The notes below the pieces were generated by a model that worked only from the letters and a program-made list of their open reading frames with translations, searched no databases and was not told the origin of the DNA. From Mantamonas sphyraenae STR306 (taxonomy: Eukaryota > Protista > CRuMs), in contig JAPMXV010000002.1 in NCBI GenBank assembly GCA_026936335.1, forward strand, positions 1 to 64,000: a stretch of 64,000 nt of DNA, read 5' to 3'. Shown here in pieces: positions 3,801-42,508 of this stretch (position 1 is the first letter of the stretch; each line of letters starts with the position of its first letter). The position numbers and the translations under genes were made by a program.

Positions 3801-4090
3801 ACCGGCAGGTTGAACGTGCCATCAAGAACACCCTCACCCGCGGTGTCACATCCCTCTCCCTCAAGATCGCCTGGCTTGACAACCCCAAACCCAGCGACGC
3901 AACACTGCACACCCTCCTCCACACCCTCATCGACCGCATCACACCCCACATTACCACCCGCCCCACCACCCCCGCACTCGTCAACGCCTACCCCATCCCC
4001 TCCTTCACCCTGCCCAGGCGCACAGACCCTTCCTCCTCTTCCTCCTCCTCCTCCTCCTCCTCCTCCTCCAAACGCCAACGCCTCGAATAA
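893..4090 (+). CDS. Subtelomeric hypothetical protein (1065 aa): Pro/His/Gln-rich and acidic N-terminus, then four homologous ~170-aa helical domains (A-B-A-B)
   Basis: Uninterrupted ATG-TAA ORF. An internal 1128-bp duplication keeps frame. The shared motif VRxGW...E...LLxH...HP...LxRxIxLxLGN...GVT...LKxxW...LLHxL occurs four times. No family recognised. Confidence 0.8.
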   Translation: MVPPMAAQPFPNMLPVSGVQNPYQHPQPPIIWVPVKAHPHQHHAYAHQGHPYYAYPPPPPPPPRQTAQTHFAQTPLHPPPAQPTTNHNRVRKRISPAFVGITRTTSTTTSSSSSHQATRQTGDSDDDDADQDTHIPDTSDVEDLMSLNFGHREARSNSSNSEWMTSSGMEAYEEDGEANDATQQQVDDEMETQGALSFADTDDAMDEEYMPQDDSDDDADDMEQEDTDEWQPRHTSRGSAQRPRGHISRHAGPQTIKGGGQSRLGFTAGSGTETGTSSTRARRTENGDTGAGKKAGVDKRNKLPDGVVRKGWKMGPSDDRSHSNKKEHTALLKHIHTLANQHPIDDITDLMTLQARVVVCHGTLNTLVRQILLALGNIPLSQGEISFCVILLGRNEDRRACRKAIPHAGLAMGVTKAGLKVCWMEEPHDHGDPNYALLHLLMTEMDTLGNRPHPTTWKEHEQTQLWLQKARRPADNNSDPHWTQCDYDHQLPTNKVETWHPESVRSGWSTYLHNDERGSCTAREFQSLLAHMKARAAKHPRHQHAHEHHALRELINNGSMNSLLRHIILALGNVGVPPVDLAFFVRLLRPRVTYRLLSPAIGNTLARGVTSLSLKIAWLDKPQPSDATLHTLLHTLIDRIIPYITTRPTTVDAVNTLDIPELVLPETTEEEVVATEDGLPDGVVRSGWTTWRKSERSHSNKKEHTALLRHMLTLANEHPIDNIPDLMTLQARVVVCHSTMTTLVRQIQLILGNIPLSQGDMAFCLILLGREIDQQACSHAIPHAGLAMGVTKAGLKVCWLEEPHDHGDPNYALLHLLMTEMDTLGDSPHPTTWKEHEQTQLWLQKARRPADNDSDPHWTQSDYDHQLTNTEVDKWYPESVRDGWNSANHGDERGSCTAREFQTLLAHMKARAAKHPRHIHTNEHQALRELINNGSLHSLLRHIILALGNVAVPPIDLVFFVRLLRPQLTYRQVERAIKNTLTRGVTSLSLKIAWLDNPKPSDATLHTLLHTLIDRITPHITTRPTTPALVNAYPIPSFTLPRRTDPSSSSSSSSSSSSSKRQRLE
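1799..3995 (+). repeat. Intragenic tandem duplication, period 1128 bp (376 codons)
   Basis: tgccagatggcgttgtgcgca at ~1800 and ~2928; gccatcccccacgctggtctggccatggg at 2102 and 3230; cccagcgacgc..cactgcacaccctcc at ~2762 and ~3890. The offset is constant at 1128. Confidence 0.95.
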
Positions 4091-4255: not shown

Positions 4256-7200
4256 ATGACCACGCGAAAACGATCATCGTCTCCAAAACACGCCCTTATC
4301 GTCGCTTCGGTCCTGCTAATCACAGCAGCTTTCACTGCGGCCTCCACACCATACACAGGCATGTTTCCTCCTCCACCAGCTCGCTCCCTTCCTCGTGCCA
4401 CCCCAACCGCTGTCTCCTCTGCCCGCCCCACCTTCTTCCCCGCGCCCCACCCCTGCTTACCCCTCGCTTCCTCCCGTCATCACCTCCGCAGGCCAAAATC
4501 ACGCAAAGTTCGTCCTGACCCCATGCGATGACTTTGCTACAAACACCAAAACCGTCTCCACATCGGCCACGGCTCCGTCCTACAGTGTCGACGTCAACAC
4601 GGTACAACCACGTGACACCCGCGTGACAACTCCCGGAAATCATGCCTTTGTTCCGGGCGACCTCATCCTACTCCAGCAGTTCATGAGCGCCGACCCCAAG
4701 CTAGACTCCTCTTCGAATCAGCTCGTACGTCCCCGTCACCCCTCCCGTCCACCTCCAACCCGCCTCCTCTTTGCACTCCCTGCACTCCCTGCACTCCCTC
4801 GAGAAAACACACGAAAATTCCCACTTCGCATGCCTTCCCCAGCCGTCACGCCGCACCCGCCCCAACCGTCCCTCTATCCCCTCTCCACCCTCACCCCCTC
4901 CCCCCCCCCCCCCCTCCCCGGCCTTCTGCCTCTCCATCACCTCGTCCACCTTACCCTTACCCTTGCCCACTCTGCTGCTCACACAATCTTCCACCTTCCG
5001 CATCACCCCGTCTCCCCTCTCCCAGGATCCCAACGCCTGGACCATCCGCAAAATCACAGAAACCGGACCGAACTGGTTCCTACTCGATGCCACCGTTCCG
5101 ATTGTCTGCCTGACCTCACAACACGCCAGGTGCCGCGCACATCGCTTCGAACGCATCGGCACCTTTCATCTCTCCGGCACCTATTCCGCCCCAGCCTGGT
5201 ACGCCCCGCCCTCTCCCCTCCCATCCCTCCCTTCCCCTCACTAACCCCCCCCCCCCCCCCCTTCCTCCCCCTCCCTCCTCCCCCCTCCCAGGAACGGCAC
5301 ACAAGGCGGCAACATCCTCCTCCACGTCCGCGAGTTCCACTTCAACGGCACCCTCTCTGCCAAAGGAAAGGGTTTCCGTGGTGGTCCTTCCGTCTCCAGT
5401 CTCAGCGCAGCCCCATCCGCACCTGGCTACCAAGGCGAGGGCGACCGATCCCTCAACGGCACCGGAGAGGAACCCGACTGGCACTTCCCCAACCACGACT
5501 ACAACGTCTACGCCTCTGCCTCCGAAACCTACGGCCCTGGCCAAACTGGAGGCGGCGCAGGACGCATCACCGAAAACGGCTTCTCTGGCGGCGGCGGCGG
5601 CGGATCTCGCACAGACGCCGGCAACGGAAACAACTTTCCAACCCCAGGCATCACCGCTAGTGGCCCCAAAGGCATCAAATCCCCGTTCAGAATGCACTGG
5701 GGTGGCGGTGGAGGCTCGGGCGCCGTCTTTGGCACCCAACAGCCCGCGGGTGCCTCCGGCGCAGGTGGAAACGGCGGCGGTCTCGTCGTCGTCCTCGCCG
5801 ACAAAATCATCCTCGGCCCTGCCGCGGTCATCGACGTCCGCGGCGACGACGGCATGAACAGCACACACACAGATTACTTCGGCACAGGCGGAGGCGGAGG
5901 CGCAGGCTCTGTCTTTGTCCAAGGTGACGGCATCGACCACGACAACCTCCCGGTTTCCCTTCTCCGTCTCAGCGGCGGTGCAGGACACACCACCACAGCA
6001 ATCAAGGGGCCCTCGGGCTCTGGTGGCGATGGTACTTCCTTCATCTTTGGCAAGTCCGGCTGCAACGCCGCCCTCCAGCTCAACAATCCGGCCTCGCCTG
6101 CAGAACCTCTACGCCTTCGCCTCACAAACCTCCACCTCGCCTCCACAAAGGCATGGGGATGCCCATGGCGCGATTGCTTCTTTCGCACCCCGCTCCCCGC
6201 CTACAACACCGTTTTATCACCTTTTTCCTCACTTAACTCCGTCAGCGCCACATCCTTCTTCTGCAGCACAGCAGGTGCTCTCAGTGCTGCCTGGCACTCT
6301 GCCCTCGACGCAGACTTTATCTCCTCCGTTGCTCTCCAGCACGGCCGTGTCGGCGGTCCCTGGACGCGCAGCAACCACGGTCTCTACTTCTCCAACGTCG
6401 ACAACTCCCAAAACGACTTCCAGCCACCCTTTGCCATGGGCCAACCATCCTCCGGCCCAGCTGACGACTGGTCCTACTTCTTCCCTGCCCTTCGCAACAT
6501 CCAATCCCCTCCTCATCTGTCTGTCGGAACCTTCAGCACCACCGCCGTCCTTGTTTGCCGCAGGCACCTCAACGTCACCTGCACCCTGCGTTCCTCCGCA
6601 AACACCACCGTTGTTTCGGGCTCCTTCTCCTCCCTCGACACCGTCGAATGCCCATTCTCACAACTCCCAGACCCGGCCCTCGACTACACCGTCACCATCC
6701 ACCTAGCGGGCCTCAAGGCTGCCTCCCTCTCCTTTGCACATCCCGCCGCACGCTACACACATCCAACCTCCTGTGACCACACCCTATACCCTTCCTCCAC
6801 ACTCGCTCCCGCGGAGCACATCCTCAACCAATACTACACTCTCGCCACAGACGTCCTCCCACACGCCACCACAATCTCCCTTGCCACCCTCCCCTCCCCT
6901 CCATTCACCTCATCCGACTACATCCTCCTCCACGCCACCCAGCGCCGCGACATCTCCCTTGCAAACGCCGCACGCGTGCCCTTTGCCTCCTCCTACATCC
7001 TCGCACGCGTACGCTCTGCAAACGGAAACCACCTCACCCTCGACCGCCCCGCAGGTGCCTTTTTCACACGCCTTGGCTCTCAACTCGTACGCGTCGCCAC
7101 CTACAATGCCCTCACCCTCCCCGACGGCGCATCCATTCTCCCCAAGCCCTGGGACGGCCACACAGGAGGCATCGTTGCCATTCGCGCTGCTTCCCTTCAT

Positions 7201-10200
7201 CTCCATCCGGCCTCCTCCATCAACGCTTCCGCAGCAGGCTTCCGTGGTGGTTCCACACCCCCTCACAGCGGACACGGCATGCCAGGCGAGGGCCAGTACG
7301 GCCTCCCTTCAATCCCCACCACCGCCGCTGCAGGTCTCGGTGCAGGTGCCGGTCCAAACAACCCTCCACGCAGCGGTGCAGGTGCTGCAGGCCCTTCCGC
7401 AAATGGTGTGGCTGCACAAAACTCTCCTGCACAGCCAGGTTGGCAGCCTCCCGTCCTGCGATCCCCGACCTTTGGCGGAGGCGGAGGCGCTGCAGGCGCA
7501 GACAACCCGGGCGATGGCGCACACGGCGCCACAGGCGGAGGTCTCATCGTTCTCGCTGTCGAGAATCCCATCACAGGCAACGGATCTCTCCTTGTCGACC
7601 CGGAACAGCCACGCTGTGGCAACCTTGCCTGTGGAGGCGCAGGCGGACACGGCGCAATCCTCTCCCTCGCCGCGTCTCAGGCTTCCTCCGTTCCGCCCAA
7701 CGCCACCCACGTTGCAGACGCTGCTGCTCTCTGCATCGCACCCTCCTTCTCACAGCGTCCTCAGACAATCCCCTCCTACATCCCGCTCTCCCTCGCCAAT
7801 TTGGCCCTCCCCACAGACACTTCACCCGCCCTCTTTGCTCCCTCTCTACATGCCCATCGCTCAGACGCTCGTCTCTCCTGGACACAGGCCAGGGACGCTT
7901 GCGTCGCGCACCACGGCCCCTCCGCTGTTCTCGCTCCCGTAACCTCGCCCACACAGCTCCAGTGGCTTCTCCGCCACGCCATGGCTCTCCAGAAACCGCC
8001 TTCCGTCGACGACCGCGTCTGGCTCGGCGTCCACTCTCAGCTGCACGCCGCCTCGACACGCCCTCTCGACCCGGACACGCCCTTCCTCGCCTACAATCCC
8101 AGCGTCTCTGCACGTTGGGTCTGCCAGGGCGGCTCCCAGCGCTTCTGTCAGCCCCAGGCCGCCGCAGCAAACTACACCAGCACCGATGCACGTGCTCTAC
8201 ACGCACTCGTTTTCGACCGTGCAGGCAACCTTCTCCTCGCAGGTGCACACGCGCAGAACCTCTTTGTCCAAAAGATCGACCCTGCAGGCGTCTCCCAGTG
8301 GCTCTACACCCTTACAGCCACCTCTGCCTCTCCCGTTGTCGACGCACTTGCCCTCGATCCCCAAGGCAACATCTACGCCGCCGCACGCACGTACGCCTCC
8401 CTCGACGCAAAGCCTCACCAGGGCGCCGCAGACATCTTCCTCCTCAAGCTCGATCCCACAGGCAACAAGCTCCTTTCCACCGCCTTTGGCACCTCTGCAG
8501 ACGATATCCCCGTCGCCCTCATCATGTCTGCAAATGCCTCCTCCTTCTATGTCGCCGGACACAGCGCAGGCGCAAACGCCCCGTTTGCAGGTCGCATTGA
8601 CGCTCGTACTCTCAGCCCGCACTGGGCACTCCTCAACGGCCTCCCTGCCACAGACGCTCTCCACGCCGCCTGCACAGACTCACACGACAACCTCTACCTC
8701 GCCACCGCAAACCAAACTCTCAAACTCGACTCTGCTGGCTCCCTCCTCTGGTCTGTGCCACACGTCGCACGCGCCTGCTTCGTTCACAACCAAACCTTCT
8801 ACGCCACAAACGCTTCTGCTCCCTCCCTCTTTACCCTCGACCCATCCACTGGCGCTCTCCTCTCCACATCCTCCCTCGCCCCCTCCTTCTCCGCTCTCCA
8901 CTCCATTGCCTTGACTCCGTCCGGCCTTCTCGTCCTCGCGGGTCACACTCCTTCCAACTCTCTACTCCAACTCGCCTCCCTCAGCACCCCAAACCAACCC
9001 ATCAACCGCTTCCTCGCTCCCTTTGCAAACAACTCCCGCCTTGCCGTCTCCTGTGCCTCTCAACTTGCGCTCGCTGCCCCGCTCTACACTCCCGCTCACT
9101 TCACTGCGCGCATCTATCCCTCCGCCGTGCCTCCCTCCATCATCTCTCCGACTACCTTCGCCGTCATCCCAGCCTCCACGACCTTCCTCGGCGCATCCTA
9201 CTCGCTCCAATTCGCCGATCCAGATTCCGCTCAGCTCACCCTCACCGTCTCCTGCGGCACAAACTGCTCTCTCAGCACCTCACGTGCCACCGCATCCGCC
9301 CAGCATCTCACTTCCCTTTGGGCCAACATCACCATGACCCCTCCCCCGTCTCCAGTGCCCACAAACAGACTCGTCGTCACCCTCGCCGACGAATCCACTT
9401 CCGTCTCCCTCAACATCTCCCTCCGAGCATGTGCTTCTCACGAGGTCTCCTCCTATGCCCTCCAGTTTGGCACTTCTGCAATCGACGCCCGACCACTGCC
9501 TGCCTTGGACACCGCAGGCAACCTCTTTCTCTCAGCACAGGTCTCCGCTGCCTATCCAGGTCTGACTCACCTTGGCGGAAACGACATCCTCGTCCTCAAG
9601 TACTCTCCAGAAGGCTCCTTCCTCTGGGCTCGTCAGTTTGGCTCCACAAACACAGACACTCCCTACGCCTCCACAACAGACTCGGCTGGCGCCCTCTACC
9701 TCGTCGGCGCGTCAACAACTGCCCCGTTTCTCGGCCAAACAAACGCCGGCTCCACAGACGCGTTTCTTGTCAAGCTTTCATCACACGGAAGCATCCTCTA
9801 CGCAAACCTCCTCGGCACAGTCGGAACCGAACGCTATACCGCTCTTGCCCTTTCCCACGACGAAAACGCCCTCTATGCCGTCGGCGCCTCCACCGCCGCT
9901 CTCTTTGCGGCACAAGCAGGAGGACCCTTTATCGTCAAGCGCGACGCACACACGGGCTCCCTGCTCTGGGGGTTCCAGACGGAGGACGCAGGCACCCAGA
10001 ACTACCTCGCCCTTGCCCTCGATGCAACACAACACGCCTATGCTGCCGGATCCACAACCGCATCCATCGGAGGCCAGCCCATGGTGGGCACCTCGGCGTG
10101 GCTCGTCGTCAAGTACGACGTCTCGCAAAACAATGGCACCTCGGCTCCCGTCTGGACGAGGCTTTTCTCCAGCGCAGGCACAGACTCTGCAAAGGCATGC

Positions 10201-13200
10201 GCCATTCTCGGCACCTCTCTCCTCGTCGCTGGTGACTTTACAGGCTCCTCTTTCCTCGCACAGCCTGGACACGGCTCCACCAACGCCGCACTTCTCGCCC
10301 TCAATACCACAGACGGTTCCGTCCTGTGGGCACGCTCCCTCTCCTCTCCTGCAACCTCGCCCCACGCCGTCTTCTTCACCAGCATCGCCGCCACGCCCAC
10401 AGGCCTCCTTGTCGCCGTCGGTGAGATCAACGGGCCCGTTCACAATGTCGTCCACCACGGCGATCGTGACGTCGTCGTCGCCGTCTACGACGCCTTGGGC
10501 TCCCTCGTCAACATCTCGGCCCTCGGGAACGCTGTCCATCAGTACCAGGCCACCGTCGCTGCCGGGTGCTCCCGCTCCATCGCAGTTGCTGCAATCACAA
10601 ATCCCACCAACCTCTACGCACCCTTTCTCGGTGGCGCCACAGACCTGTTTGTGCACACATACGCCCTCGACGTCCCTCCCTACTTTGCCACCCCGCTGCC
10701 GCAAACTCTCGACGTCACCACAACGGCCCTCGGCGCTGCACATCCGCTCGTAGTCGCTGACCCCGACAGCAACGTCACTCTCTACCTCACCTGCACGGCG
10801 TGCACCCCGTCCGCCTCATTCTGGACTGGCTCTCCCGCACACGTCTCTGAACAGTGGGCCAAGCTCACCGTCACTTTTGACACTGCCGTCCAGGACCAGC
10901 TTCTCAACCTCACCCTTGCCGACGGCACCTCTGTACGTCACTCCTCCTCTCGCATCCTTGGCGTATGCCCGCCCTTCAACTCTTCCTCCACCGCCGTGGT
11001 TCAGCCCTACCCGGACGCCATCTTTGAAGCTGGCTCCATTGATGCCTCCGGCGACCTCATCCTCGCCGGCATCCAGGACGGCAATGCCGTCCCCACCCTC
11101 CTCCTCGCCAAGTACTCTCCGTCTGGCTCACTCCTGTGGTCCCACACCCAAAGGGCATTTCGAGATCGTGCACGTGCTGTCGTCACCGATCCCCACCGCA
11201 ACATCTACGTGTGCGGCTGGACACACGACACCTCCGCCACACAAAACCTCGCCGCCGTCATCTACAAGTTCTCCCCTGCAGGCACCCCCTCTGGAACCAC
11301 ACCGTCGACACAGACCAGATCGACATGTTTACAGCCTGTGTCCTCACAAACGACGCGTCCGCCCTCTACGCTGTCGGCACCACAACAGGCGCTGCATTCG
11401 CTACCAACCAAGGTGGTGTAGACATCATCCTCCAAAAGGTGGACGCTGCAACAGGCACCCCCGTGTGGTCCCGCCAGTACGGCAGCTCCACAGCCGACGT
11501 CCTTAGTGCCGTCTGCATCGACGCAACCGACACCCTCTACGCCGTCGGCGAGTCTTCGGGCTCCTTCAACAACGCCTCATCACAGTCTGCACTTCCAGAC
11601 ATGCTCGTCATCAAGCTTTCTCCCTCTGGCCAGCACATGTGGACTCGCATGTATGGCACCTTGAACGCAGACACCCTCAGCGACTGCGTCGTCCTCAACG
11701 CCTCGCTCTACGCCGTTGGATATTCCTCGGGCCTCGACTTTTACACCCAGCCGCCACTCGGCGGCAGCCGCGACTCTGCCTTTGTCGCCATCGACACCGC
11801 AAGCGGCAACCTCACACACACCGCCCTCTTTGGCACCTCTGTAGATGACCGCGCCCAGGGTATCGCTCTCATCGGCAACGACGCCCTCCTTGTCACAGGC
11901 TACTCCGCTGCCAACGGCACCCTCACTCCAAACAACACATCCACCCACACGGACACCTACTACTCCATCCTCTCCTTCCAAGGCGACGTCCTCTCCACAC
12001 ACCGTGCCCTGCCCGCAACTGCAGACACACAGTCCACCTTTGTCGCTGCCTCTCCCCACTGCTCCCGCAACATGCTCATCGGTGGCTCCTTCGCCTCCTC
12101 CGCCTTTTTCCTCCCACTCACCGTCAGCGTGCCGCCCACCATCTCTCTCTCCTCCCGCATCGACGCCACAACCACTGCCATCGGCATGGACTACCCGCTT
12201 GCCATCTCTGACGTCGACTCCTTGTCACTCACCCTCACCGTCTCGTGCGACGCCTGCGTTCTCGCCGGTCTGTCGCTGCCCGCTAAAGGCACTCCTGCCT
12301 CCCTGCAGCAGCGTTGGTCCAACCTCACCGTCACTTTTGACCCTACACGAGGACGCAACATCTTCACTGTCTCTGTCGCAGACGCATACTCTCAATCCCG
12401 TGCCGTGGCTGCCGTCGTCGGCGGATGCCCCGCCTACCCCGGCGATCTCTCCCTTCACGACTCCATCTCAGGCAGCCAGGTCGCACATGGCAGCACCGTC
12501 GACAGCGAAGGAAACGTCATCATCGGTGGCTACACAGACGCACCCTACCCAGGCCACACCTACTTTGGCGGCACCAGCGATGTCTTTGTGCGCAAATTCG
12601 CTCCGGATGGCTCCCTCCTCTGGACCTGGTACGCAGGCACTGTGGCCGCAGACCACGTCTGGGATGTCAGTGTCGATCTCTTTGACAATGTCTACGCCTC
12701 GGCAGACATGCAGTCCTCCTACGCTGCCGTCTTTAAATTCGATCGCAACGGCAACCGTCTCTGGACGGCCACCTTTGACTCCACGGGCACAGATCTTGTA
12801 GACGCATGCTCTCCGTCGCACGACGGTGCACATCTATACGTCTCAGGCCAGACTACCGGTCCCCTTGTCCCCGAAGGCGCAAACCTGAACGGCCTCTCCG
12901 CCTTTGTCGCAAAACTCCGCGCCTCAGACGGACGCAGGCTTTGGCTCCGCCAAACGGGCACAACCACAGCGGCCGGCATCGAAGTAATCAGCAATTGCGT
13001 CGACCAGGCAGACAACGTCTACGTCGTCGGCGCTGCGAACGGCCCCTACAACGGCCAGATCCACATGGGTGCCAAAGACATCACCCTCATCAAGTACAGC
13101 TCGTCCGGTGACCTTCTCTGGACAAAGAACTACGGCACTGCCAACGACGACGCCGTCACCTTCTGCTACGTCCAGGACGCCACGCAGACACTCTTTGTTT

Positions 13201-31200: not shown

Positions 31201-34200
31201 TGCAGGGATTTTCCACAGGTCTCATTGATGGCTTTGCCATCGCGGTCAACATGGACACCGGTGCACGCAAGTGGGGTTACCAGTATTTGCCAACCTCCTC
31301 CGACAAGTTTTTCGCCGTGTGTCATGTCCCATCTGCACATGCGTTTGTCGCGCTGGGTCAGACTTCCGGAGGTGCGACGGGAATCGACGGTGTCGCCGTC
31401 GCCTTTGGTTCCACCACAGGCCAGCTCCTCTGGGAGTCTCGCTACGGTGGAGACGACAACAACGTTGACTCGTATTACGATTGTGCCGTGGATGACTCGT
31501 CCACAGTTGTCTTTGCTGCAGGTGCAGGCGAGAGTGCCTCCTACTCCGGTGTGGCGTACACCGGCACCGCCGCAAGTTTCCTTGTCAAACTGAACGCCAC
31601 GTCGGGGGCCACGATGGCCACAAGGGTAGTTTCGGTTGCATCTGTGGGCAATCTGCCACATGTAGACATGTTTGCAGTGGCGTTTGATGGCGGAAACGGC
31701 GTCTTTGTCACTGGCTACGCGCGCAGGTCCACGGCGCTGTACACGACAACAATGGTCATGGCCCGCTTCAACACAACACTTGACCAGCAATGGGCACGTG
31801 CTGTCACACCAGTAACCACCGAGACGACGACAAACGCAAGGATGTCCCAGGCGTGGTTCGGGGACGGGTACGTGTTTGTCGGCGGACGCTACGACGGCCT
31901 CTACCCAGGCCAAACCCCAACCCCGGGCCGCACAGGTGGCCTTGGCAGAATTCCCATCATCGTAAAGGTCGACCCAAACACAGGTCAACAGGTCGGCGTG
32001 CGTCAGTTCATGGACTTGGTGGCAAACATTGGCGCCGGCAACCGCGGCATCTCTGTCGACAACGGCGTCGTGTACACCACAGGCCGTGCCCAAGGCCAAA
32101 TTCAGGGCTCTCTTAGCACCACGCTCCCCAGCAATCGCTACTCCGCCTTCTCCCTGCGTGTGCCGGAGACTGCCACCCTCAACGTGTCCACCTACACCGT
32201 GGTCATTTCTCCCGCCGCGGTGCACGGCCCCTCGTGTACAGCCAGCGGCGGTGCCCTCTCCGCTGTCAGTCCCTTCAACACACAGAGCTTCGACATTTTT
32301 GCACGTGACGCCTTTGGCAATTTGCGCAACGCCGGTGGAGATACCGTGCAGGTGAACATTACTCGCGCAGGCGACGCCCACTCCTCGCTGGCCAGTGTGG
32401 CCTACCTCGGCCAAGGCAAGACACAGGCCCAGTTTGTTTCTCTCGCTGGTCCAGACACCTACACGGTGCGTGTCAACGTCAACGGCGCCTCGATCAGCGG
32501 CAGTCCGTGGTCGGTCCAGGTGCTGGATGTGGCCAACATCTCCGCTGTGAACCCAACCACGGGTCCATCCACAGGTGGCACCGTCCTCACCATTGACGGA
32601 GACAACTTTGTGGACAACGCCCAGTTGACAGCACGTGTGGGCGAGTCCGTTTGCGCCTCCACGACCTTTGTCTCGCGCACTCGCTTCTTGTGCACCACCC
32701 CCGCAGGCTCTCCCGGTGTCTCGGTCTTTGTCAACGCCACAAACAACTTGGCCAACTACACCACCGGTATCAACATCACCTTTTACGAGCCAGAGACCGT
32801 TGCTGCGTTCACTCCTCAGGTTGGCCAGACCACCGGTGGCGAGACCATCACTGTCGCTGGAACGGGACTTCATGCCCAGCGATGCATCTTCCGTGACGCT
32901 TTGACCAGCCCTGTAAACTCGGCAAGGCACGAGCACAACCTACGTGTCCAGCACGCAGGTGATCTGCACCACACCCCAGCTCAACACGGGCAAGTACACC
33001 TTGGGTGTGGCCAACAACGGACAGCAGTTTGTGCAGCATGCCACAGACGTGTACAACGCCGTGGACCCGTTCTCGCCTCTGTGTCGCACAAAGAGCGAGC
33101 TCGACTTTGCCGTCGCCGACCGCGTGGCTCTCGGCCTGCGCTATTTTGAGAACCTGGCCACAAACGCCACCACCACAGGAAGTGCCACCGGCGTCACCGA
33201 CGGTGTGTACCCTGCAGGCATCCACGACAACGACCGCTGCTGTGAAAAGACCGACGCCAACCAAGGCTTCAAGTGCGGCCTGCAGTTTGCCCAGAACAAC
33301 ACACATTGGGTGTATGCACAGGTCAATCTGCCCATCGAGGCCTTTGCCAACGAGATCATCCTGTCGTGGTACCAGTCGTGCCGCAACACGCCGCCGTACT
33401 ACGAGGTGCAGGCTTTCATTGCGGCCACGCAAACTTGGCAGACCATTGTACAACGCGTGACCAAGCAGAGCGCATCGCGCTCGGTACACAGCGTCCCTGT
33501 CGTGTCGTTCCCTCCGATGCCAACGATGTCGGCCTCTGTGTGGACTTTTTGGCGAGCGAGGTGCGCTCGTCGCATTTCCGCGTCGGATTCAACAACAGCG
33601 CGGGAGCCATGGGCACGCTTGTGACAGCCACAGATGGCGGATGGCTGTATGAGTTTGAAGTGCATGGCATGTTTGTGACCACGCCCGAGTACACGACACT
33701 GCTGAGCGATTTGAGCGGATTGGGCGATGTCAACGCAACCGCAAGCGTGACCCTGCCGCACATCACCGTCGCCACACACAACCACCAGAACGAAACGTTG
33801 TTGTCGAATGACACCGTGACCAATACGGCAACCATTCGCGTCTTCCGCAACGGCGCCGACGTGACCGGAGCAGTGCTCATTGGCGGATCAGTGCGTGCAG
33901 TGAGCGGAGGAGTCGCCAACTTTACGGGCTTGTCGCTCAGTACGCCTACCATCGGCCTGTACTCGTTCTTTGTTTCTGTCACACCTGCGCTGACCACAGT
34001 GGTGACCTCTGTCAACATCGTCGCCGGAGCCCCCACACAACTGACGCTGAACAACACCGACAACACGCTGTCCTCGACACAAGCGTCTCCGTGGCTCTGC
34101 CTACCATCGGCGTCGTTGTGCGCGACGGCGGCAACAACGTACTGGGTGGCCTCGACACCCTCAACCGCACCGTGGTCCTCGACGTCATTGGAGGTGTGCG

Positions 34201-37200
34201 GGTGGCCACCACGTACAGCCAGGCTGCAGGTGCTGCACAGTTTGTCGGTGCCACTCTGGCTGCGCCCGTCCCCGATGCCTACACGCTCCAGGTGGGTACG
34301 CTGGGTCTCGTCAACGCGACCATCGCCTTGACCATCTCCAGTGGTGCACCCTACAAACTTGTGGCGTCGCCTACGTCCCTGCAAGTGAGCAGCTCCGCGC
34401 TGACTGCTCTCCCTGCCGTCAGTGTGACCGTGCAAGATGCAAGTGGCACGACCACGAGCGTCTCACCCGTCACCGTCACTGCGGCGCTCCCGTCGCCGCA
34501 CCAGGCAATGCTCCAGGGTGTCCTTTCTGCTCTCAGTGACCGCGGTGCGGCTACCGTTGACAACGCACGCCTTGCTTCTCCTGCGCGAGGCAACTACACG
34601 CTGCAGTTTGGTGCGACCGGGTTGATCGGCGCAAACGTCACTGTAGAAGTGCTTCCGGGCGCTGCTACACACATGGCTCTGCTCAACCTGCCCGCCACGG
34701 TGCTTTCGCGCGTGTCCACATCGTTGGGCACGATCTCGGTGCAAACACGCGATGCCGGTGACAACTCGCTCGTGGGCCTCGATGTCGATCGTCTTGTCTT
34801 GATCAATATCAAAGACAGCAACGGGGTGCAACTCGGCTCCGCGTCCGAGACCATGCTGAAGGGCAACGTCTCTGTGTCCTCGCTCGCACTCGCATCCCCT
34901 GTGGCCGGCGTGTATGCGGTGGAGCTGAACACAGCTGGGCTTCCCGTGCTCACCACAACGTTTAACGTTTCGGTGGGTCCCATCCATACCCTTCGCATCG
35001 TCTCCCCTGCATCGATCAGCGTCGAGACTGCGCAGATTGCTTACCTGGGCGCGTTGACGGTGCAAGGTTTTGATGCAGGCAACAACACGATCGTCAGCGA
35101 CAGCAACCGCACGCTCACTCTAGCGCTGCAACCGAGTGCCACTGTAACCAGCACGACCACAGCCACGCTCGTCAACGGTTTGGCCTCGTTTGCCAACGTG
35201 TCGCTGCAAGCACCTGCTCTGGGCGCGTATGTGCTTCGTGTCAGCACACCCAACGTCGGCAATGCCACGGTGGGCGTGCAAGTTAACGGCGGCTTGCCCT
35301 TGCGTTTGCTTGCAGTGGTCACCACATCCTCCACCGTGCAGGCGGCAGCTGTGACCGCAGCACCGACCATCCGCCTCACAGCCGTCGACGCAAGCGGCAC
35401 TGCTGTCTCCGCGTCTCGCTTTGCCGGCCAGAACCTCTTCTTGACGGGCGCCAACGCTACATTGGACCTCGCTGGCACGCTCAATGTGACTGCCACGAGC
35501 GCGGTGGTCGTGTTTGACGCCGTGCAGTTGCTCAAGCCTGTGGCTGGCGACTATGCGCTCAACTTCCACAGTCCGCTGCTAGGCAATGTCTCTGTGTCCA
35601 TCCGCGTCACGGTGGGCGTTCCCTTTCAGCTGGCGGTTGTGTCTGGCGCCGCCCAGTCGCTTGCAACTAACCTGCAGGTTGCGCTGGGTGCGGTGACGGT
35701 GCAGGCTCGAGATGTCGCGGGGACCCTTGTGCCAACGGCCTCTGGCATCACCGTCAACGTGGACGTTCCCGCTGCGCTGCAGACCTCTGGTCCCGCGTCT
35801 GTCTCTGTCACCAACGGTGTGGCCACGCTGACGGGCCTGCAGTTGCTGCGCCCGCCCACAGCCAACTTCTCCCTTGTGTTCCATGCAGCCTCTCTCCTCA
35901 ACACATCGGTGGCCCTGCAGATTGTACCGGGCCAGGTCGTGTCTCTGGATGTGCCCTCTGCCCACCTGGGCAGTGTCCACGCGGTTCTCAACACGCCCAT
36001 CAACGCCACTCTTCTGATCGGCCGCGATGCAGCAGGGAACGCTGTCGACGCCGCACAGATGGTTGCCCGCAACGCATCTGTGCAACTGCTCAACAGCACA
36101 CAGCTTGCCCAGCTGCAGGGTACGCTGCAGCGAAACGCCACTCATCCATTCGCAGACCTGACTCTGACAACACCTCGCGTCGGCCGTTACGTCCTGCGCT
36201 TCGCCAGCACGGGTCTCTTCTCCGTCGACATGACCATCGATGTGATCACGGGACCGCCTACAGCGCTGGTGGTGCACTCGCCTGCCAGTGCCTCTGTGGT
36301 GGTTGAAAGCCGTGTGTTTTCAGCCTTGGGCGCCGTCGACTTGCGCGTCGTAGATGCCGGTAACAACATGCTGGGTGCACTCGATGGACTCAACCGCACT
36401 GTGAGCGCGTCTGTCAACGCTGGCGGTGTGCTCGTGGGCGTCCAGGTGGTCACCAGCGTGTTTGGCCGCGCCGTGTTTTCTGATCTTGCCCTGCAATCGC
36501 CACAGAACGGCTCCTACACGCTGTGGTTCCTTGCGCAGGGTCTGCGCAACACGTCTGTGGCTGTCCAGGTGGGTGTGGGTCAGCCGTACGCGCTGGCTCG
36601 CATTGCCCCCGTGACGACCCTTCCCTACGCGTCCATCCCCTCTGTGCCTCTGTCTACGATCACCGTGGAGCTTCGAGACGCAGGCGATACCGTGACCACG
36701 GGTGATGTGCACGTGCACGCTGCATTGAATGTCTCCATCGCTGGCGTCACTCTGCAGGGCACGCTGACGAAAGCAGTCGACGCCAACTCTGGCCGCGTGT
36801 CCTTCACCGATCTCAAGCTCACGGGACGCATTCCCATCGGCTCGTATGCCATCCACCTGACAGCCTCGTCCCTGCGCAACGTTACTGTGCCCTTTACTAT
36901 CCTTGTGGGACCACCCACAACCATCCGTGTGACCTCGCCCTCGTCGCCTTTGGCGGCCCAGGCTCTCACCGCCCTGCCCACCCTGCAAGCCGTTCTTTTC
37001 GACTATGGTGACAACCCAGTGGGTGCGGATGACACCGCCGTCAGGCCCGTGGCTGTGACGCTGCTCAACGACACCGTTGCGGCAACTGGAACACAAGACG
37101 TTTCCAGTGTCTCGGGCGTTGCGAATTTCACTGCAATCCAACTCATCACACCACGTGTGGGTACATACGTGATTCGCTTCTCATCAAACGGCCTTGCCAG

Positions 37201-40200
37201 TGCAGACGTGCACGTGCGCGTGGTTGTCGGTGTCGCCGTCAAGCTGAGAGCCCCAGCCCCAGCGTCGATCACTGTCACTTCCAACGTGGATATCTCTCTG
37301 CCAACCATCGCCGTGGAGGCTGTGGACGCAGGCAACAACGAGGTCGGCGCCACAGATGTGCCCCAGACACGCATCGTGGCTGTTGGCATCTCTGCCGGCG
37401 GTGCAAGTGGCCTCGTCGGGGCACGTGTCCACACCATGCGAAACGGAAGTGCCACCGTACCGGGTCTGCGTCTCAAGTACCCGCGCGCCGGGTTGTATGT
37501 GCTCACACTCAACGCCAGCGGTCTGGCAGACACAGCACTGCAGCTGACGGTGACGGTGGGCTCGCCGCACGCACTCGACGTGCAAACAAGTTGGCAGGGC
37601 ACCTTTGCGTCCACGCGTACGTATGTCCTCCCGACCCTGACTGTGCGTGTCGTCGATGTTGCAGGGAACGCGTTGGGCGCGAGCGACCCCGTCTCCTCGC
37701 GCTCTGTCAACATCACATGCGCCACCCTGCTCCTCAGCGGCTCCACCTTTTTCGCCACCAACCAGGGATCCGCACAGGCCACAGCTGTCACCATCACAAA
37801 TGCCCCGCAAGCGCTGCACACCATTGTGCTGTCCACGCCGGGCTTGCTGAGCGCAAACGTCACCGCCAATGTCACTGAAGGCGTGGCAGAGCGCCTGCAG
37901 GTATCTGTGGCCCCAAGTGCCGCCCTTGCGAGCGCAGAACTCACGCCCGTGACGCCTCTGCAGGTGGTTGCGGTCGACGCAGGCGGCACTCGCACAAACA
38001 CATACCCTCCGTTTACGGTGGTGCGCGTCTCGCTGCTGGATGCTCCGTCAGACTCGGGCGTCTCGTTGGTGTCCCTCGGCTCGTTGGAGTACCTTGCTGA
38101 AGGCGTGGCCACGTTCAACAACCTGCGCATGGTGAGGCCGCGCGCCTCCGACAAGACATACACCCTGCGCGTTGACGTGATCGGCCTCGACTGGGTGACC
38201 GACACGCTCACGGTCTCGATTGCCATCGGCGCACCGTATCGCTTGGTGTGTGAGTTTGGCGCCGCTGCCGCGACCCTGTCTGACTTCAACTCCATCGTCC
38301 CGACGGTGTCGGTACGCCAACAGGACGTCGGTGGCAGTTGGGTCTACGACCACCCTGCCGAGAAAGACATCTCCGCAGCGCTGTTGAACACCACGTCCGC
38401 TCTGAGGAGTGCAGGCTCTGTGGAACGCATGCGCAACGGAACGGCTGTGTTTGCCATGCTTGCCTTGCAGTCGCCCCCTCTCGGTGTGTATGTCATCGAG
38501 TACAGCAGCGGCACGCTGCTCAAGACACGTTCTCGCGTCCTCGTGGTCACCGGGCGACCCGTAGCCCTGGACGCCACCGCCTCTGCAAAGGCTGTAAGCA
38601 ACCGCAGCGCACAGGTCACTGCCGTCGATGTGCGTTCCTTCGACGCAGGCGGAAGCCCAGTGGGAACCAGCGACACGCTTGCGCGTCCCGTTCGGCTCGC
38701 TGTCAAGACGTCGCCCGGCGGATTGGATGAACAGCGTCAACCTGTGGCTGTCGTCAAACTCAGTGGCACCGTGCAGTACACGATGGCCCAGGGTGTGGTT
38801 CGCATCGACGGTGTGCGATTGTTGCGTCCGGTGGTGGGCATCCACACGTTGGAAGTGTCCACCAATGGTCTGTCCAGCGGCACCCTGGCCATCAACGTCA
38901 CCAGTGGCACCGCGGAACATCTGTTTGTTGTCTCCGGCGCCTCGCCGTCGTTGGCCTTTGCCGGTGGCGCCGCGACCGATGTGCCTGTACCGGCAATGTC
39001 TGTGCGTGTGGTCGACGCAGGCGGCAATGCGCTTGCGTCTCCGGTCGTTGCCCCGACGCCTGCGTACCACGTACAGGGCACAGTCGATGCTCAAATGCAC
39101 AGTTTCCTCGTGCGCGTCACCGCCGACGCTGCCGGTGTCATCCTCGCAGGCAACGCCGAACTCACTGCCACTGCTGCCAACGCCTACGAGGTCAGCTTTG
39201 CTGACCTGCGCCTGACCCCAGTGGCGGGCACCTACTCGCTGACGTTTTCTGCTGCTGATCTGGCCACCGCAAAGACGTCGGTCACTGTCAGGCACGGTCC
39301 ACCTGCAACGTTCCGATTTGTGCGTCGCTTGGCGTCCGTTGCGGACAACCGCAACACGGCAGCCACACCGTTTGCACAACAACCCATTGTTGAAGTCGTC
39401 GACACCGCAGGCAACCGTGTCAACACAAGCGACGTCCTGGTGCGCATCCAGGTGTCTCGCTTCACCACTGGAGGCCAGTTCGAGATGACGGCCAGGCAGG
39501 GAGTGGCCAACTACACAGGAGTCTTCTACACGGGCCCTTTTGGCAACGCCGTGGATGTGTTTGTGTCGGGCACAGACACACTCACGAATGCGCAGCTGAC
39601 TCCCGTTGTTCTGCCCAAAGCCCTGACCTTCATTGGCTGCGCCGAATTCCGCCCCAATTCTCAGGCCACGGTGACCAACGACACGTGCATCTGCTCGCCT
39701 GGCCACTTCTCGGCCACGCCCGACTCGCCGTGCACACCATGCAACGACCAAAGCTACCAAAACGACCCTGGCCAGGATTCGTGCGACCCGTGCGGAAGCA
39801 ACAGGGACACAAACGGCATTCTGGGAGCCATTGCACGCAAGCAGTGCGTGTGCTCGTTCGGCTACTACGAAAATGCCCTCACCAACGGTGATTGTGTCAT
39901 TTGCCCCGCCGGTCTGGAGTGCAGACAGGACATCAACAACGGATACCACGTCAAGCCGGGCTACTTCAGCTTCAACCTGAGTGCAGCCACGTTCGAAACC
40001 TGCCCCAATCCGGACGCCTGTCTGGGTGGAAGCAACTCCTCCTGCGCCGAAGGATATCGTGGCCCGCTGTGTTCGCTGTGCGACCCCGGGTACGGCAAGC
40101 GCGGCACAACCTGTGTCAAGTGTGACCAAGAAGAGGTGAGCTGGCTGTATGTGGTGGGCACGTTCCTGGCCCTCATCTACATCATCATCTCGCTGGCTCG

Positions 40201-42508
40201 CCGTGGCCAGGGCAAGCGCAAGAGCATCCGCGCCATCATCAAGAAGATCCTGCTCAACTACATGCAGGTGCTGGCGTTCATCGGTGACTTCCGCATGCGC
40301 TGGAGCGGTCTGATGCTGACCATTTTCCAGATCAGCGGAATCACCAATTTCGGACTGTTCCAGCAGCCGTTGGACTGCACCACCAAGTGGACCTACTACG
40401 ACAAGTTTGTTTCGTACACACTGGTGCCCATTGTGTGTGTCATTGTCCCTCTCTTTGCCTACGGCTGTGCCTGGCTGGTCAAGCTGGCCTCGCGAAAGAT
40501 CACCGCCAAGTGGCTCTTTGACTTCAACACCTTTTGCATCCGCGTATCCGTCGCCGCCATCTTCATTGTGTTCCCGGTCATCACCAACAATGTGCTCACC
40601 TTTTTCAACTGCAAGCGCTACTCCGACACAGCGTTCCTCCTTGTCGACGATCTCAGCATCTCGTGCGAGGACCCGGAATACCTTGCGTGGCGTGCGCTGG
40701 CCATCGTGGCTGTCATCATCTATCTCGTCGGTTTCCCGGCGTTCTTTGGCTACTTGTTGTGGAAGAGCAAGAAGAACCCCAAGATCTTCCCCAAGATCGA
40801 CTTGCTCACACACGGCTACGTCGGCAAACGTTACTGGTGGGAGCTTGTCATTCTCGTCCGCAAGATCATCATTGTGCTGGTCGTGATCTTTTACAAGGAC
40901 GAGCCCCTGACGCAAATCTACTTTGGTCTGTGGATCATCCTTTCTGGCCTTGTGTTGCACCTGTACGCGCGTCCATTCAAGCATCCGCTGCACACGCGCC
41001 TGGAGACATACACACTATTGGTGACATGCATGACTCTGATGGCAGGCATGATGTTCTTCAGCACTGAAGCGACAGAGGACGAAAAGACGGCCCTCACGGT
41101 GGGCCTCTTTGTGCTCAACATGGCCTTGGCTCTGATGTTTGTCACTCTACTCTTCTACCTGTGGGCCATCAGCAAGTGGGAGAAGTATGTGGCAAAGCGC
41201 ATTGCAGGCAAATACGCCATGAAGAAGCGCAGCGCAAGCAGATGGGCCGACTCGGGCAAGTTTGACGTCATTGCCAGGGCGGTCCTGGGAACCGGTCTGG
41301 ACTTTGCCAAGGAGCAGAAGGACGCTGAAAATGCCACGCTGGCCGCGCCAAGTGCGCTGGTGGGCCAGATCAAGCTGGAGAAGCAGGACAGCGGCTTCGA
41401 CCTGAAAAAGGTCATCGACGAGGGCGTGGACATCAGCAAGTACTACGAAAAGGAGCTGGAACAGAAGGATGAACTCGAGGTCGCCAGCAAAGAGCGAGAG
41501 CGAGAGCTGGAACAGATCTCTGCTTCGCTGTCCCAGAGCAAACGCAGCACAATTGGAGTCAAGGCGCTGGCGCTGGACGAGTTTGACGCCGACAGCGAGG
41601 TGTTGGACAAGAAGAAGCAAGCCATCGAGCAGCGTCAGTCAGAGTCGTCCGAGCGCATGGAGCAGCTGCGCAGGCGCAACAGCACCGCACAGACGCGCGA
41701 CCCAAAGGAAGGACTTTCGCGAGCCCTGGCAAGCGGCAAGCGACGCATCGAGGTTTTTGAGCGCATCTCGCAGGATGTGGGCGCCCAGCGATACGGCAGC
41801 CTCGTAGGTCAGATGTGGGAGCGCGTGGTGGCCCTAGAAAGCGAGCGGGAGATGCTGGAGTCGGAAGAACTCCTGGACCAGGTGAACGAGATCCTGCTGG
41901 AGTACTTTGACGACGACGCCAACGAGTGTGTGGACGTGGATTTCGGCGTTCTCAGCAATGTGCTGGAGCAAATGGAGGAAGTGGAGAGCGGCCAAGACGC
42001 CGTCGCGCTGCTGGACCTTCTCTGGCGCGACTTGTTCCTGCCCACATGGATGGACATCAAACAGGGTGTCATCTACCAGGAAGGAGGCGAGACAAAGCAG
42101 GACACAGAGGCCAAGGGCTGGGCTGGCCTGCGCACAAAGCTGCGCTCGGGCTCGCTGGTACACTCGAAAGCAAAGTCGGCCTCCATCCTGCGCAAGGATC
42201 TCGATGAAAAGGTGGAAGGTGGCCAAGCCTCGATCTTGGATGTCGTCAAAGCCGCCAAGGCGACGGAAGAAGCCGGTGGACGGAAGAAGAAGCGCCGCGG
42301 CCAACTGGAGGATGACGACGCGGAAGGGCAGGGTGATGAGGAGGAAGTGGAGGCTGTTGAAGACAAGCAGTCTGGTGATGAGGAAGAAATGGCACTGGTT
42401 GAGGACACAGAGGCTGATGAGGAGCAAGACGTCGATGAGCTGATGCTCAAGAAGAAGAAACGAAAGAAGAAGCGCAAGAAGGCGCTTGACGATGAAGAAA
42501 GCGAGTGA
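4256..42508 (+). CDS. Giant multidomain cell-surface/adhesin-like membrane protein, ~12,550 aa. Exons 4256-4358, 4492-4724, 5026-5198, 5292-24880, 24964-42508, with 6 apparent 1-nt frameshifts
   Basis: Signal-peptide-like start (MTTRKRSSSPKHALIVASVLLITAAFTAA). Splicing the four introns gives a continuous frame that matches the internal repeats (e.g. APAW|NGTQGG vs PKPWDGHTGG). ORFs 5692, 11136, 13343, 16270, 24975, 32944, 33273 and 34091 each continue the repeat pattern of the previous one across a frameshift or intron. The only TM cluster is at the C-terminus. Confidence 0.85.
4359..4491 (+). other. Intron 1 of giant gene, non-canonical GC-AG
   Basis: ACAG|GCATGT donor, pyrimidine tract, GCTTAC branch-like site, CCGCAG acceptor. 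Phase 1 joins ...PYT-G-QNHAKF in frame. Confidence 0.7.
4725..5025 (+). other. Intron 2 of giant gene (GT-AG)
   Basis: GTACGT donor, C-rich body with poly-C and (TGCACTCCC)3, CCCAG acceptor. Phase 0 joins SNQL|DPNAW. Confidence 0.7.
5199..5291 (+). other. Intron 3 of giant gene (GT-AG)
   Basis: GTACGC donor, CTAAC branch point at ~5241, CCCAG acceptor. Restores the conserved AW-NG-TQGG motif. Confidence 0.88.
8170..24570 (+). repeat. Array of 11 coding units (~1.5 kb period), each an SBBP-like beta-propeller plus a cadherin-like Ig domain
   Basis: Blade motif DxxGNxYxxG...D(A/I)F(V/L)xK(Y/F)xxxGxxLWxRQ(F/Y)GTxxxD repeated. Each propeller is followed by PP...DxD..LTLxxxCxxC...GTPA...W...VSDG...GxC. 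Units start near 8190, 9450, 11000, 12470, 13950, 15500, 17020, 18540, 20060, 21560 and 23095. Confidence 0.88.
24881..24963 (+). other. Intron 4 of giant gene (GT-AG, 83 nt)
   Basis: GTAAGT donor, T-rich tract, GCAG acceptor. Joins ORF 16270 to ORF 24975 in frame (WTN-L-NDGVYDM). Confidence 0.9.
26750..32530 (+). repeat. About 11 filamin-type Ig repeats, two of them carrying inserted domains
   Basis: Recurrent AG...VxxRDxFGN...(A/S)GTYxLxV...H(I/V)xGSP motif, typical of filamin/ABP280 repeats. Confidence 0.82.
32535..33670 (+). other. Two IPT/TIG domains plus a discoidin (F5/8C)-like beta-sandwich within the giant protein
   Basis: ISAVNPTTGPSTGGTVLTIDGDNF...CTTP and FTPQVGQTTGGETITVAGTG...CTTP; then ENLATNATTTGS...YEVQ...TWQTI...LYEFEVHG. 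Confidence 0.72.
33720..39625 (+). repeat. About 18 tandem invasin/intimin-like (bacterial-type Ig) repeats of ~105 aa
   Basis: Repeating GxPxxL...VxxxDAGxN...GxAxFxxLxLxxPxxGxYxLxFxxxGL...VxVxxG motif, counted 18 times. Confidence 0.8.
39630..41170 (+). other. Cys-rich (GCC2/GCC3, EGF-like) stalk plus ~9-TM membrane domain of the giant protein
   Basis: CICSPGHFS..CTPC..SYQ..GQDSCDPC and CAEGYRGPLCSLCDPGY; then hydrophobic segments with KILLNYMQV, YWWELVILVRK and ARPF motifs, common in protist multi-pass surface proteins. Confidence 0.85.

Follow-up and report, generated by a model that had tools for sequence, protein, structure and literature searches.

The left end of contig JAPMXV010000002.1 of Mantamonas sphyraenae STR306 (assembly GCA_026936335.1; contig C2 below) carries a long series of open reading frames in changing frames on the forward strand, which raises the question of whether they are pieces of one very large gene and, if so, what kind of protein this gene encodes. 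We analysed the first 64,000 nucleotides of the contig (hereafter the window, to which all positions refer; features lie on the + strand unless stated otherwise), for which an initial annotation made from the sequence alone had proposed one giant subtelomeric surface protein. The prediction that positions 4256-42508 form one gene with five exons, four short introns, ~12,549 codons and a product of ~1.31 MDa was confirmed, and the domains of this product point to a surface receptor.

Gene model

To build the gene model, frames were compared at each junction. The stop-free segments of the + strand chain from 4256 to 42508, exactly reproducing the four introns and six 1-nt frameshifts by which the initial annotation had joined them into one frame. 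The exons total 37,643 nt, and the frame arithmetic yields five missing bases and one extra base (at ~32.9k), a net correction of +4 that gives 3 x 12,549 nt; the annotated exon sum, its divisibility by three after correction and the product size of ~12,550 amino acids (aa) and ~1.3 MDa were thus all recovered on recomputation. All searches, folds and counts were done on the separate exon and frame pieces. The eleven in-frame pieces comprise 12,541 residues (1.31 MDa, 162 N-x-S/T sites), and no internal stop has accumulated across these 12,541 codons. Four junctions look like splice sites at their borders and enclose C-rich or T-rich filler; the other six are free of filler, and at these (~11287, 13703, 16221, 32.9k, 33477 and 34073) good protein sequence runs on in a different frame.

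The window gene was compared with its close paralogues on contigs C26, C53, C54 and C61. Exon 1 (4256-4358; 34 codons plus 1 nt) holds the start codon and, as read from the translation, a hydrophobic, signal-peptide-like N-terminus, and it has a weak counterpart upstream of the C53 paralogue. Intron 1 (4359-4491; GC..AG, 133 nt) is the sole junction that links exon 1 (phase 1) to the frame of exon 2. Exon 2 (4492-4724), where Gly-rich module 1 starts, is 54% identical to a separate exon of C26 and 44% identical to C54, and is collinear in the intronless open frame of C53. It is followed by the C-rich intron 2 (4725-5025; GTACG..CAG, 301 nt), at whose position C26 (234 nt) and C54 have a gap and C53 has none. 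Exon 3 (5026-5198), which continues Gly-rich module 1, is 54% identical to a C26 exon and 36% identical to C54, and the equally C-rich intron 3 (5199-5291; GTACG..CAG, 93 nt) corresponds to a 92-nt gap at the matching place in C26. Exon 4 (5292-24880; 19,589 nt) contains three single-base assembly gaps and was defined from stop-free segments, read contigs and the synonymous excess described below. Intron 4 (24881-24963; GTAAGT..CAG, 83 nt) was identified from the sequence, and here the unbroken frame of C54 has 32 residues compared with 29 in the spliced model. Exon 5 (24964-42508; 17,545 nt) contains three single-base insertions or deletions (indels) and ends with the stop codon at 42506-42508.

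Exons 2 and 3 and the start of exon 4 jointly encode one copy of a ~285-aa module. The corresponding exons of C26 and C54 are 36-62% identical and separated by unalignable gaps at matching places, while C53 encodes the module in one gapless frame. Introns 2-4 are thus supported as predictions by the collinearity of the paralogues. In the C26 paralogue, in addition, the N-terminal module (at 164-167 kb) shares a single open frame of 10,900 aa with the membrane anchor (at 135-137 kb), and since this frame joins both ends, a single product of such design exists uncorrected in the genome.

Origin of the frame breaks

To determine the origin of the frame breaks, we compared contigs from three public M. 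sphyraenae runs (X1, X2 and X3) with positions 10800-16600 of the window (5,801 letters), a stretch that covers breaks 1-3. In all three runs there is one extra base at each of these breaks (3 of the 3 breaks examined with reads), and at each of them one base is missing from the assembly. At break 1 (11287), a T is inserted behind 11287 in all three runs, and the repeat-unit profile of the encoded protein continues from position 192 to position 195 across it; each run has one inserted base at 13702, 13705 or 13706 for break 2 (13702-13706), and at 16221 or 16222 for break 3 (16221-16222). The direction of each of these corrections leads exactly into the downstream frame that had already been defined. 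Contigs of X2 and X3 reach 169-278 kb, hence these are DNA libraries, and X1 is either RNA or DNA. Because the two runs with contigs of 169 and 278 kb are DNA and their contigs carry the extra bases, insertional RNA editing was ruled out as the cause of the breaks.

Breaks 4-6 were compared with the paralogues and with transcripts of Mantamonas plastica. The open frames of the C54, C26 and C61 paralogues are unbroken over the whole 10 kb compared, and across breaks 4-6 their proteins align with the window in consecutive residues at 65-97% identity. Break 4 (32891-32941), one extra base within a second TIG-like domain, has paralogue proteins aligned on both sides in different frames, with, for example, C26 residue 1713 on either side, and M. 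plastica transcripts collinear. Break 5 (33477, one base missing) is flanked in different frames by residues 2109/2110 of C54, 1896/1897 of C26 and 1312/1313 of C61, and break 6 (34073, one base missing) by residues 2308/2309 of C54, at 83% and 97% identity. Two transcript-derived proteins of M. plastica (6,023 and 6,831 aa) are collinear over the stretch containing the three breaks. As a control, we inspected the topoisomerase II gene located at 50624-47166 on the - strand, which shifts frame at least twice inside conserved motifs (~50,000 and ~48,780) with no intron; these shifts are further assembly indels.

M. sphyraenae is a diploid with mostly mono-exonic genes, and Racon and Pilon were used to polish its PacBio reads (PMC10492846). 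Over the 5.8 kb compared (10800-16600), the read contigs depart from the window at ~59 sites, in a mosaic between runs that fits two haplotypes of a diploid collapsed differently in each assembly. Among 40 listed allelic differences, 25 are synonymous and 15 non-synonymous (random expectation 25% synonymous, p 6e-7), and all of the synonymous ones (25/25) are at third codon positions once the frames are shifted at the breaks. By this synonymous excess the frames are under purifying selection, which, together with the absence of stops in 12,541 codons, makes a pseudogene unlikely. Judged from these contigs and alignments, all six frame breaks are best explained as indel errors that arose in the PacBio-based assembly, and not as mutations. 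Genomic frameshifts in a pseudogene, which the initial annotation had named as a finding that would speak against it, are largely excluded, with breaks 1-3 filled in reads and selection acting on the shifted frames.

Membrane anchor and receptor family

Region 39659-41251 encodes two Ephrin_rec_like repeats, DUF7630 and a membrane block. The Cys-rich juxtamembrane stalk (39701-40123) was detected with Pfam, scoring 28.3 bits with PF07699 (Ephrin_rec_like, cut-off 23.1) and 32.2 bits with PF24633 (DUF7630, cut-off 27) directly before the first membrane helix. In the family alignment, 18 columns are invariant, 16 of them Cys; 15 of these Cys lie in the stalk (C25-C155) and the 16th (C240) in the membrane block, and conserved Cys, Pro and Gln positions are found across the alignment of the membrane domain. 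The profile of the Cys-rich stalk also matched the Chlamydomonas mastigoneme protein Mst1 (E 2.8e-20) and the Cys-rich domains of ephrin receptors and TNFR.

The membrane domain (40130-41158) has nine helices, read from hydropathy and from an AlphaFold2 (AF2) model, built on the family alignment, with a predicted local distance difference test score (pLDDT) of 92.4 and a predicted template modelling score (pTM) of 0.86, in line with the anchor of about nine transmembrane helices annotated initially. We used the helices, together with the positive loops and conserved Cys loops, to read a topology with the N-terminus outside and the C-terminus inside. PF06011, the family of the fungal Flc/Pkd2 "TRP" proteins, was matched by 15 of 63 aligned relatives at E<=0.01 (best 8.1e-12) and is carried by 11-15% of the members of the nearest Atlas clusters. 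A distant relationship of the anchor to these fungal proteins is thus supported as a homology that runs via intermediate relatives.

In translation, a charged helical region and a conserved block make up the cytoplasmic tail (41159-42505) together with an acidic run that terminates in a K/R run, so that the annotated acidic, poly-K tail is indeed present. The tail is 46-47% identical among the four close paralogues compared (window versus three others). A signal for an RGS domain (PF00615) in the tail is too weak to accept (E 0.035 in the window, similarly weak in 3 of 4 paralogue tails), and a PDB search with the tail profile gave no RGS match.

A full HMMER search with the anchor yielded 11,307 representative clusters at E<=1e-3, with phmmer E-values down to 2.4e-94 and single stretches spanning residues 8-520. 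The nearest relatives are transcripts of M. plastica, Rigifila ramosa and Fabomonas tropica (2,700-6,800 aa). Predicted models match the module at a template modelling (TM) score of 0.8 in Chlorophyta, Cnidaria, Haptophyta, Porifera and Ciliophora, in proteins with other ectodomains and tails, and signalling tails, for example TIR or START, occur in relatives. By these matches the predicted protein is a direct member of a very large, uncharacterised eukaryotic family of multi-pass proteins with Ephrin_rec_like/DUF7630 stalks. Our literature search on DUF7630 returned no paper. In M. sphyraenae itself, at least 77 genomic loci encode the Cys-rich stalk together with the nine-helix module (from 124 matches; e.g. 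C5:371277, C70:169129 and C49:371245). Because many of these loci sit in open frames of 2,000-6,800 aa, a large share of the coding capacity would be devoted to this receptor family.

Ectodomain modules

Domain evidence for the ectodomain was gathered with Pfam scans, iterative hidden Markov models (HMMs), self-BLAST, phmmer, AF2 models, Foldseek and VIA-align. Pfam matches in the window pieces comprise SBBP, PQQ_2, Filamin, Invasin_D3, Ig_GEX2_N, TIG, Ephrin_rec_like and DUF7630. The hydrophobic N-terminus at the 5' end, which fits the single signal peptide of the initial annotation and is putative by sequence, leads into Gly-rich module 1. Module 2 (6823-7677; ~285 aa) comprises a small beta-barrel followed by Gly-rich turns, and HMM copies of it were found in the window and in the paralogues. 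Module 3 (25050-25922; HMM E 1.8e-81) is connected to modules 1 and 2 by self-BLAST, and the annotated number of three Gly-rich modules was thus found by HMM. An AF2 model of module 2 built from nine copies has a pLDDT of 76, with low confidence in the Gly-rich part; its barrel bears a weak resemblance to N-terminal regions of phage tailspikes (Foldseek E 2e-5, TM 0.25; Z 5-7). We rejected a tailspike likeness of the module, as only the small barrel matches and the Gly-rich part is poorly modelled. A word-index search of the Gly-rich module gave one weak match, and an Atlas search with the N-terminal 500 aa gave no usable match.

A C-type-lectin-like stretch follows at 7780-8202. Its label in the initial annotation keeps weak support, from phmmer matches to ovocleidin-17 (E 0.0028) and CD69 (E 1.4), without a match to the Pfam family Lectin_C. 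The next and longest feature is a propeller array (8128-24669) of 11 units of ~505 aa, each consisting of a Cys-containing linker (~75-100 aa) and a beta-propeller of the SBBP/PQQ type. Self-BLAST offsets within the array are multiples of ~505 aa and the units share 22-33% mutual identity; Pfam reports SBBP (2.9e-34) and PQQ_2, and the unit HMM yields the 11 units. A twelfth, divergent beta-propeller (30816-31943) lies inside the filamin region and was recovered with the unit HMM (1.5e-77) and by self-BLAST to the array units, which accounts for the twelve propellers annotated. The 11 cadherin-like domains of the initial annotation, in contrast, found no support: for the linker that had received this label, no Pfam cadherin match was found at E<=1, and a profile of its 11 copies found nothing in the PDB below E 0.6. 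Separately, we noted a possible closing half of the lectin-like stretch after the array (24400-24879), with a short motif ending in Y-I-C-E, in which case the array would be nested in a split C-type lectin domain; this second half had no match in the PDB.

We further searched the array (16222-24879) against proteins from outside. Within the length range searched, the best match is an SBBP protein of 4,813 aa from a Polyangiaceae bacterium (E 1e-142, 23% identity, 84% coverage), and the other eight array matches are mostly from bacteria or metagenomes. The array may be of bacterial origin.

Between module 3 and the stalk lies an immunoglobulin (Ig) region. A filamin-type Ig region (26820-32507) contains 9 copies by iterative HMM, with inserts that include a weak DUF4082-like stretch (Pfam Filamin 2.7e-42, Ig_GEX2_N 1e-13, DUF4082 E 0.003); of the 11 filamin domains annotated, nine were thus detected and the remaining two were not found. 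The IPT domain, also annotated, was recovered as a TIG domain at 32535-32783 (Pfam TIG 1.1e-17), preceded by a filamin/Invasin_D3-like repeat (Invasin_D3 3.8e-7, Filamin 2.7e-6). A domain with a faint discoidin (F5/8 type C) signal at 33292-33746 (F5_F8_type_C E 0.069) is divided by frame break 5 and is 42-48% identical to M. plastica transcripts. The stalk proper consists of 18 tandem Ig-like repeats (33747-39619) with a period of ~107 aa (iterative HMM E 1e-16 to 1e-28). Their annotated number stands, but "invasin-like" is a mere label, as the 18 repeats match no Pfam family. A literature search for giant propeller/filamin proteins of protists found nothing relevant.

Chromosome-end setting and paralogues

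The window opens with ~240 nt of CCCTAA repeats, has a GC content of ~60%, and forms the left end of C2, a contig of 439.8 kb with telomere repeats at both ends, in an assembly of 25,061,354 bases and 78 contigs. These figures agree with the published description of the FALCON assembly (25.06 Mb, 78 contigs, GC 59.19%, TTAGGG repeats at contig ends; PMC10492846). An open frame at 893-4087 (+) encodes a 1,065-aa orphan protein that recurs 0.8-4 kb from many contig ends with 81-85% protein identity. At least 43 copies were scored among 298 candidates, all of them reading inward, away from the telomere. This frame is a chromosome-end element common to most chromosomes, and the giant gene, which starts at 4256 behind the CCCTAA repeats and the end element, about 4 kb from the telomere as initially annotated, is the first unique gene after it.

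To find related genes at other chromosome ends, as the initial annotation had proposed, we located the members of the close-paralogue group, five in number including the window gene. C2 and C53 abut the end element, C53 likewise at the right end of its contig; the C61 paralogue finishes ~11 kb from its contig end, and C54 and C26 are internal. A tract of ~4.3 kb (32499-36852), within which breaks 4-6 lie, is 92% identical at the DNA level to C54 (C54:334297-338660), reaching 95.6% over its inner 3.7 kb (33151-36852), while its flanks are at most 75% identical. Such a pattern suggests recent gene conversion between the giant paralogues. Together, these sequence comparisons suggest that duplication and exchange at chromosome ends shaped the small close-paralogue subfamily, which does not thereby show a variable-expression system. 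The likeness to variable subtelomeric gene families that had been drawn is thus partly supported: the position of C2, C53 and C61 near ends and the tract shared with C54 speak for it, and the internal position of C54 and C26 and the dispersal of the wider family of at least 77 loci speak against it.

Proposed function and alternative explanations

Taken together, the results are explained best, and we think probably, by one functional gene whose breaks are assembly errors and which encodes a type-I-like surface receptor, passing binding at its tip to a membrane domain and tail. In such a protein, the signal peptide would lead into an ectodomain of ~11,800 residues made of Gly-rich modules, a lectin-like stretch, twelve propellers, filamin and TIG domains and 18 Ig-like repeats, with a length that we roughly estimate at a few hundred nanometres. 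The Cys-rich stalk would link this ectodomain to the nine-helix, Flc/Pkd2-related membrane domain, followed by the conserved charged cytoplasmic tail. On the substratum or on prey bacteria, the distal lectin-like and propeller modules may bind to glycans or proteins; the binding or pulling would then travel down the stalk to the membrane domain, which may signal by ion flux, as proposed for Pkd2, or via the tail. We infer a function as an adhesion or force-sensing receptor, which fits the domains and the distant kinship of the anchor with Flc/Pkd2.

Several points weigh against this account. The four splice junctions and the full-length transcript are predictions, intron 1 with its GC..AG borders is based on frame arithmetic alone, and breaks 4-6 are based on alignment to paralogues and transcripts, the reads covering breaks 1-3 alone. 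Pfam does not recognise the tip modules, and their ligand-binding role is a guess. The PF06011 match of the window itself (19.7 bits, E 4.2e-4, profile positions 157-416 of 426) falls short of the 28.5-bit cut-off, and the membrane part has no solved structure among its matches: Foldseek returned none at E<=0.001, VIA-align gave Z<8 with scattered helical matches, and the profile search matched the Cys-rich stalk alone.

The main rival retains an intact gene and sees its product as a passive coat, adhesion or gliding-surface protein, in which the nine-helix domain is an anchor or sorting module without signalling; Chlamydomonas FMG-1B is a comparable passive gliding-surface case. The adhesin-type domains of the ectodomain would fit this, as would the sub-threshold PF06011 match and the lack of a channel relative among solved structures. 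M. sphyraenae, a marine flagellate, also glides on surfaces (PMC10492846). However, a nine-helix domain that is conserved in 11,307 clusters, and in which Cys, Pro and Gln positions are invariant, exceeds the needs of an anchor, as does a tail conserved at 46-47%, and relatives have TIR or START signalling tails, so that we hold a passive role to be somewhat unlikely.

If the region held two or more genes with separate transcription, or internal promoters giving shorter products, there would be no 12,549-codon protein at all. The longest transcript contig of M. sphyraenae (32.28 kb; PMC10492846) indicates, for the species and not for this gene, that very long transcripts occur, and it is shorter than the 37.6 kb required here. 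Short-read transcript assemblies, however, seldom span such repeats, and several genes would leave unexplained that no in-frame stop occurs over 37.6 kb once the indels are allowed for, that the sole signal peptide lies at the 5' end and the sole anchor at the 3' end, and that C26 joins both ends in one frame. We consider such a split improbable.

A pseudogene, in which at least breaks 4-6 are real in the sequenced strain, would draw on the position of these breaks (~32.9k, 33477 and 34073) outside the read-compared stretch and in a 4.3-kb tract 92-96% identical to a paralogue, where exchange could bring errors. Yet all three breaks examined with reads are assembly errors, topoisomerase II is likewise broken, the 12,541 codons are free of stops and the allelic variation shows purifying selection, which makes this explanation very improbable. 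GEX2 and FUS1 are single-pass proteins of ~1,000 aa, and a mating or gamete-recognition protein of their kind, to which the Ig_GEX2_N match (1e-13) alongside the filamin and Invasin_D3 repeats could point, is hardly credible for a protein of this size and topology in which the match is one Ig domain among dozens, the more so as five close paralogues and at least 77 family loci fit a receptor repertoire better.

Within the receptor reading, a bolder version, speculative and in our estimate rather doubtful, is a self-contained tether-and-channel mechanosensor, in which the filament is fused covalently to an Flc/Pkd2-type channel and contact with prey or substratum directly gates ion entry. If this were true, the loci of the family (at least 77) would be the main contact-sensing repertoire of the lineage, as would thousands of relatives in algae, ciliates, sponges and cnidarians, and the family would be an old, unstudied class of eukaryotic receptors with a membrane fold without solved relative.

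Under the broader reading of a surface receptor, too, the locus has practical and biological implications. Automatic annotation of the assembly will probably fragment the gene because of the single-base assembly gaps, and frame breaks in this assembly should be taken as errors, given that the three breaks examined with reads all proved to be so. Once corrected, the gene would rank with the largest protein-coding genes known from free-living protists, taking up 0.15% of the 25-Mb genome. It highlights a very large family of eukaryotic receptors in which no member has been studied and no membrane structure solved, and may offer a concrete case of a filament fused to a channel-like domain. As Mantamonas is a deep branch of the eukaryote tree, its surface receptors are relevant to the question of how surfaces and prey were sensed and gripped by early eukaryotes.

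Comparison with known systems

Compared with other members of the Ephrin_rec_like/DUF7630 family, the window gene, with its 12,549 codons, is about twice as long as the longest relative listed (6,831 aa), and none of the listed relatives examined carries a twelve-propeller array. Giant SBBP-repeat surface proteins of bacteria resemble the predicted protein in their propeller units of the SBBP/PQQ type; the identity is only 23%, however, and the Mantamonas gene has introns and a eukaryotic membrane module.

The fungal PF06011 proteins (Flc1-3 of S. cerevisiae and Pkd2 of S. pombe) have a membrane domain that is homologous at the family level. Pkd2 has been described with an N-out topology, about nine helices and a charged helical cytoplasmic tail, and in this it resembles the window protein. 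The fungal ectodomain is small, whereas the predicted protein has ~11,800 residues outside and a Cys-rich Ephrin_rec_like/DUF7630 stalk; Pfam reported no TRP_N domain for the window protein.

Polycystin-1/PKD1, PKDREJ and the sea-urchin REJ receptors combine a very large ectodomain, a lectin-like domain and many Ig-like repeats with a channel-related multi-pass domain and a helical tail. They are the closest analogy in design to the window protein, which is an analogy and not membership: PKD, REJ, GPS/GAIN, PLAT and PKD_channel had no Pfam match in the window pieces, and none of the solved TRP or polycystin structures matches its membrane fold.

The Chlamydomonas mastigoneme, finally, is an extracellular filament (Mst1) anchored by PKD2, a membrane protein of the TRP type. 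Mst1 has only the Cys-rich repeats in common with the window protein, in which, unlike in the Mst1/PKD2 pair, the filament and the membrane domain would be parts of one polypeptide and the membrane domain is of the PF06011 kind and not of the PKD2 kind.

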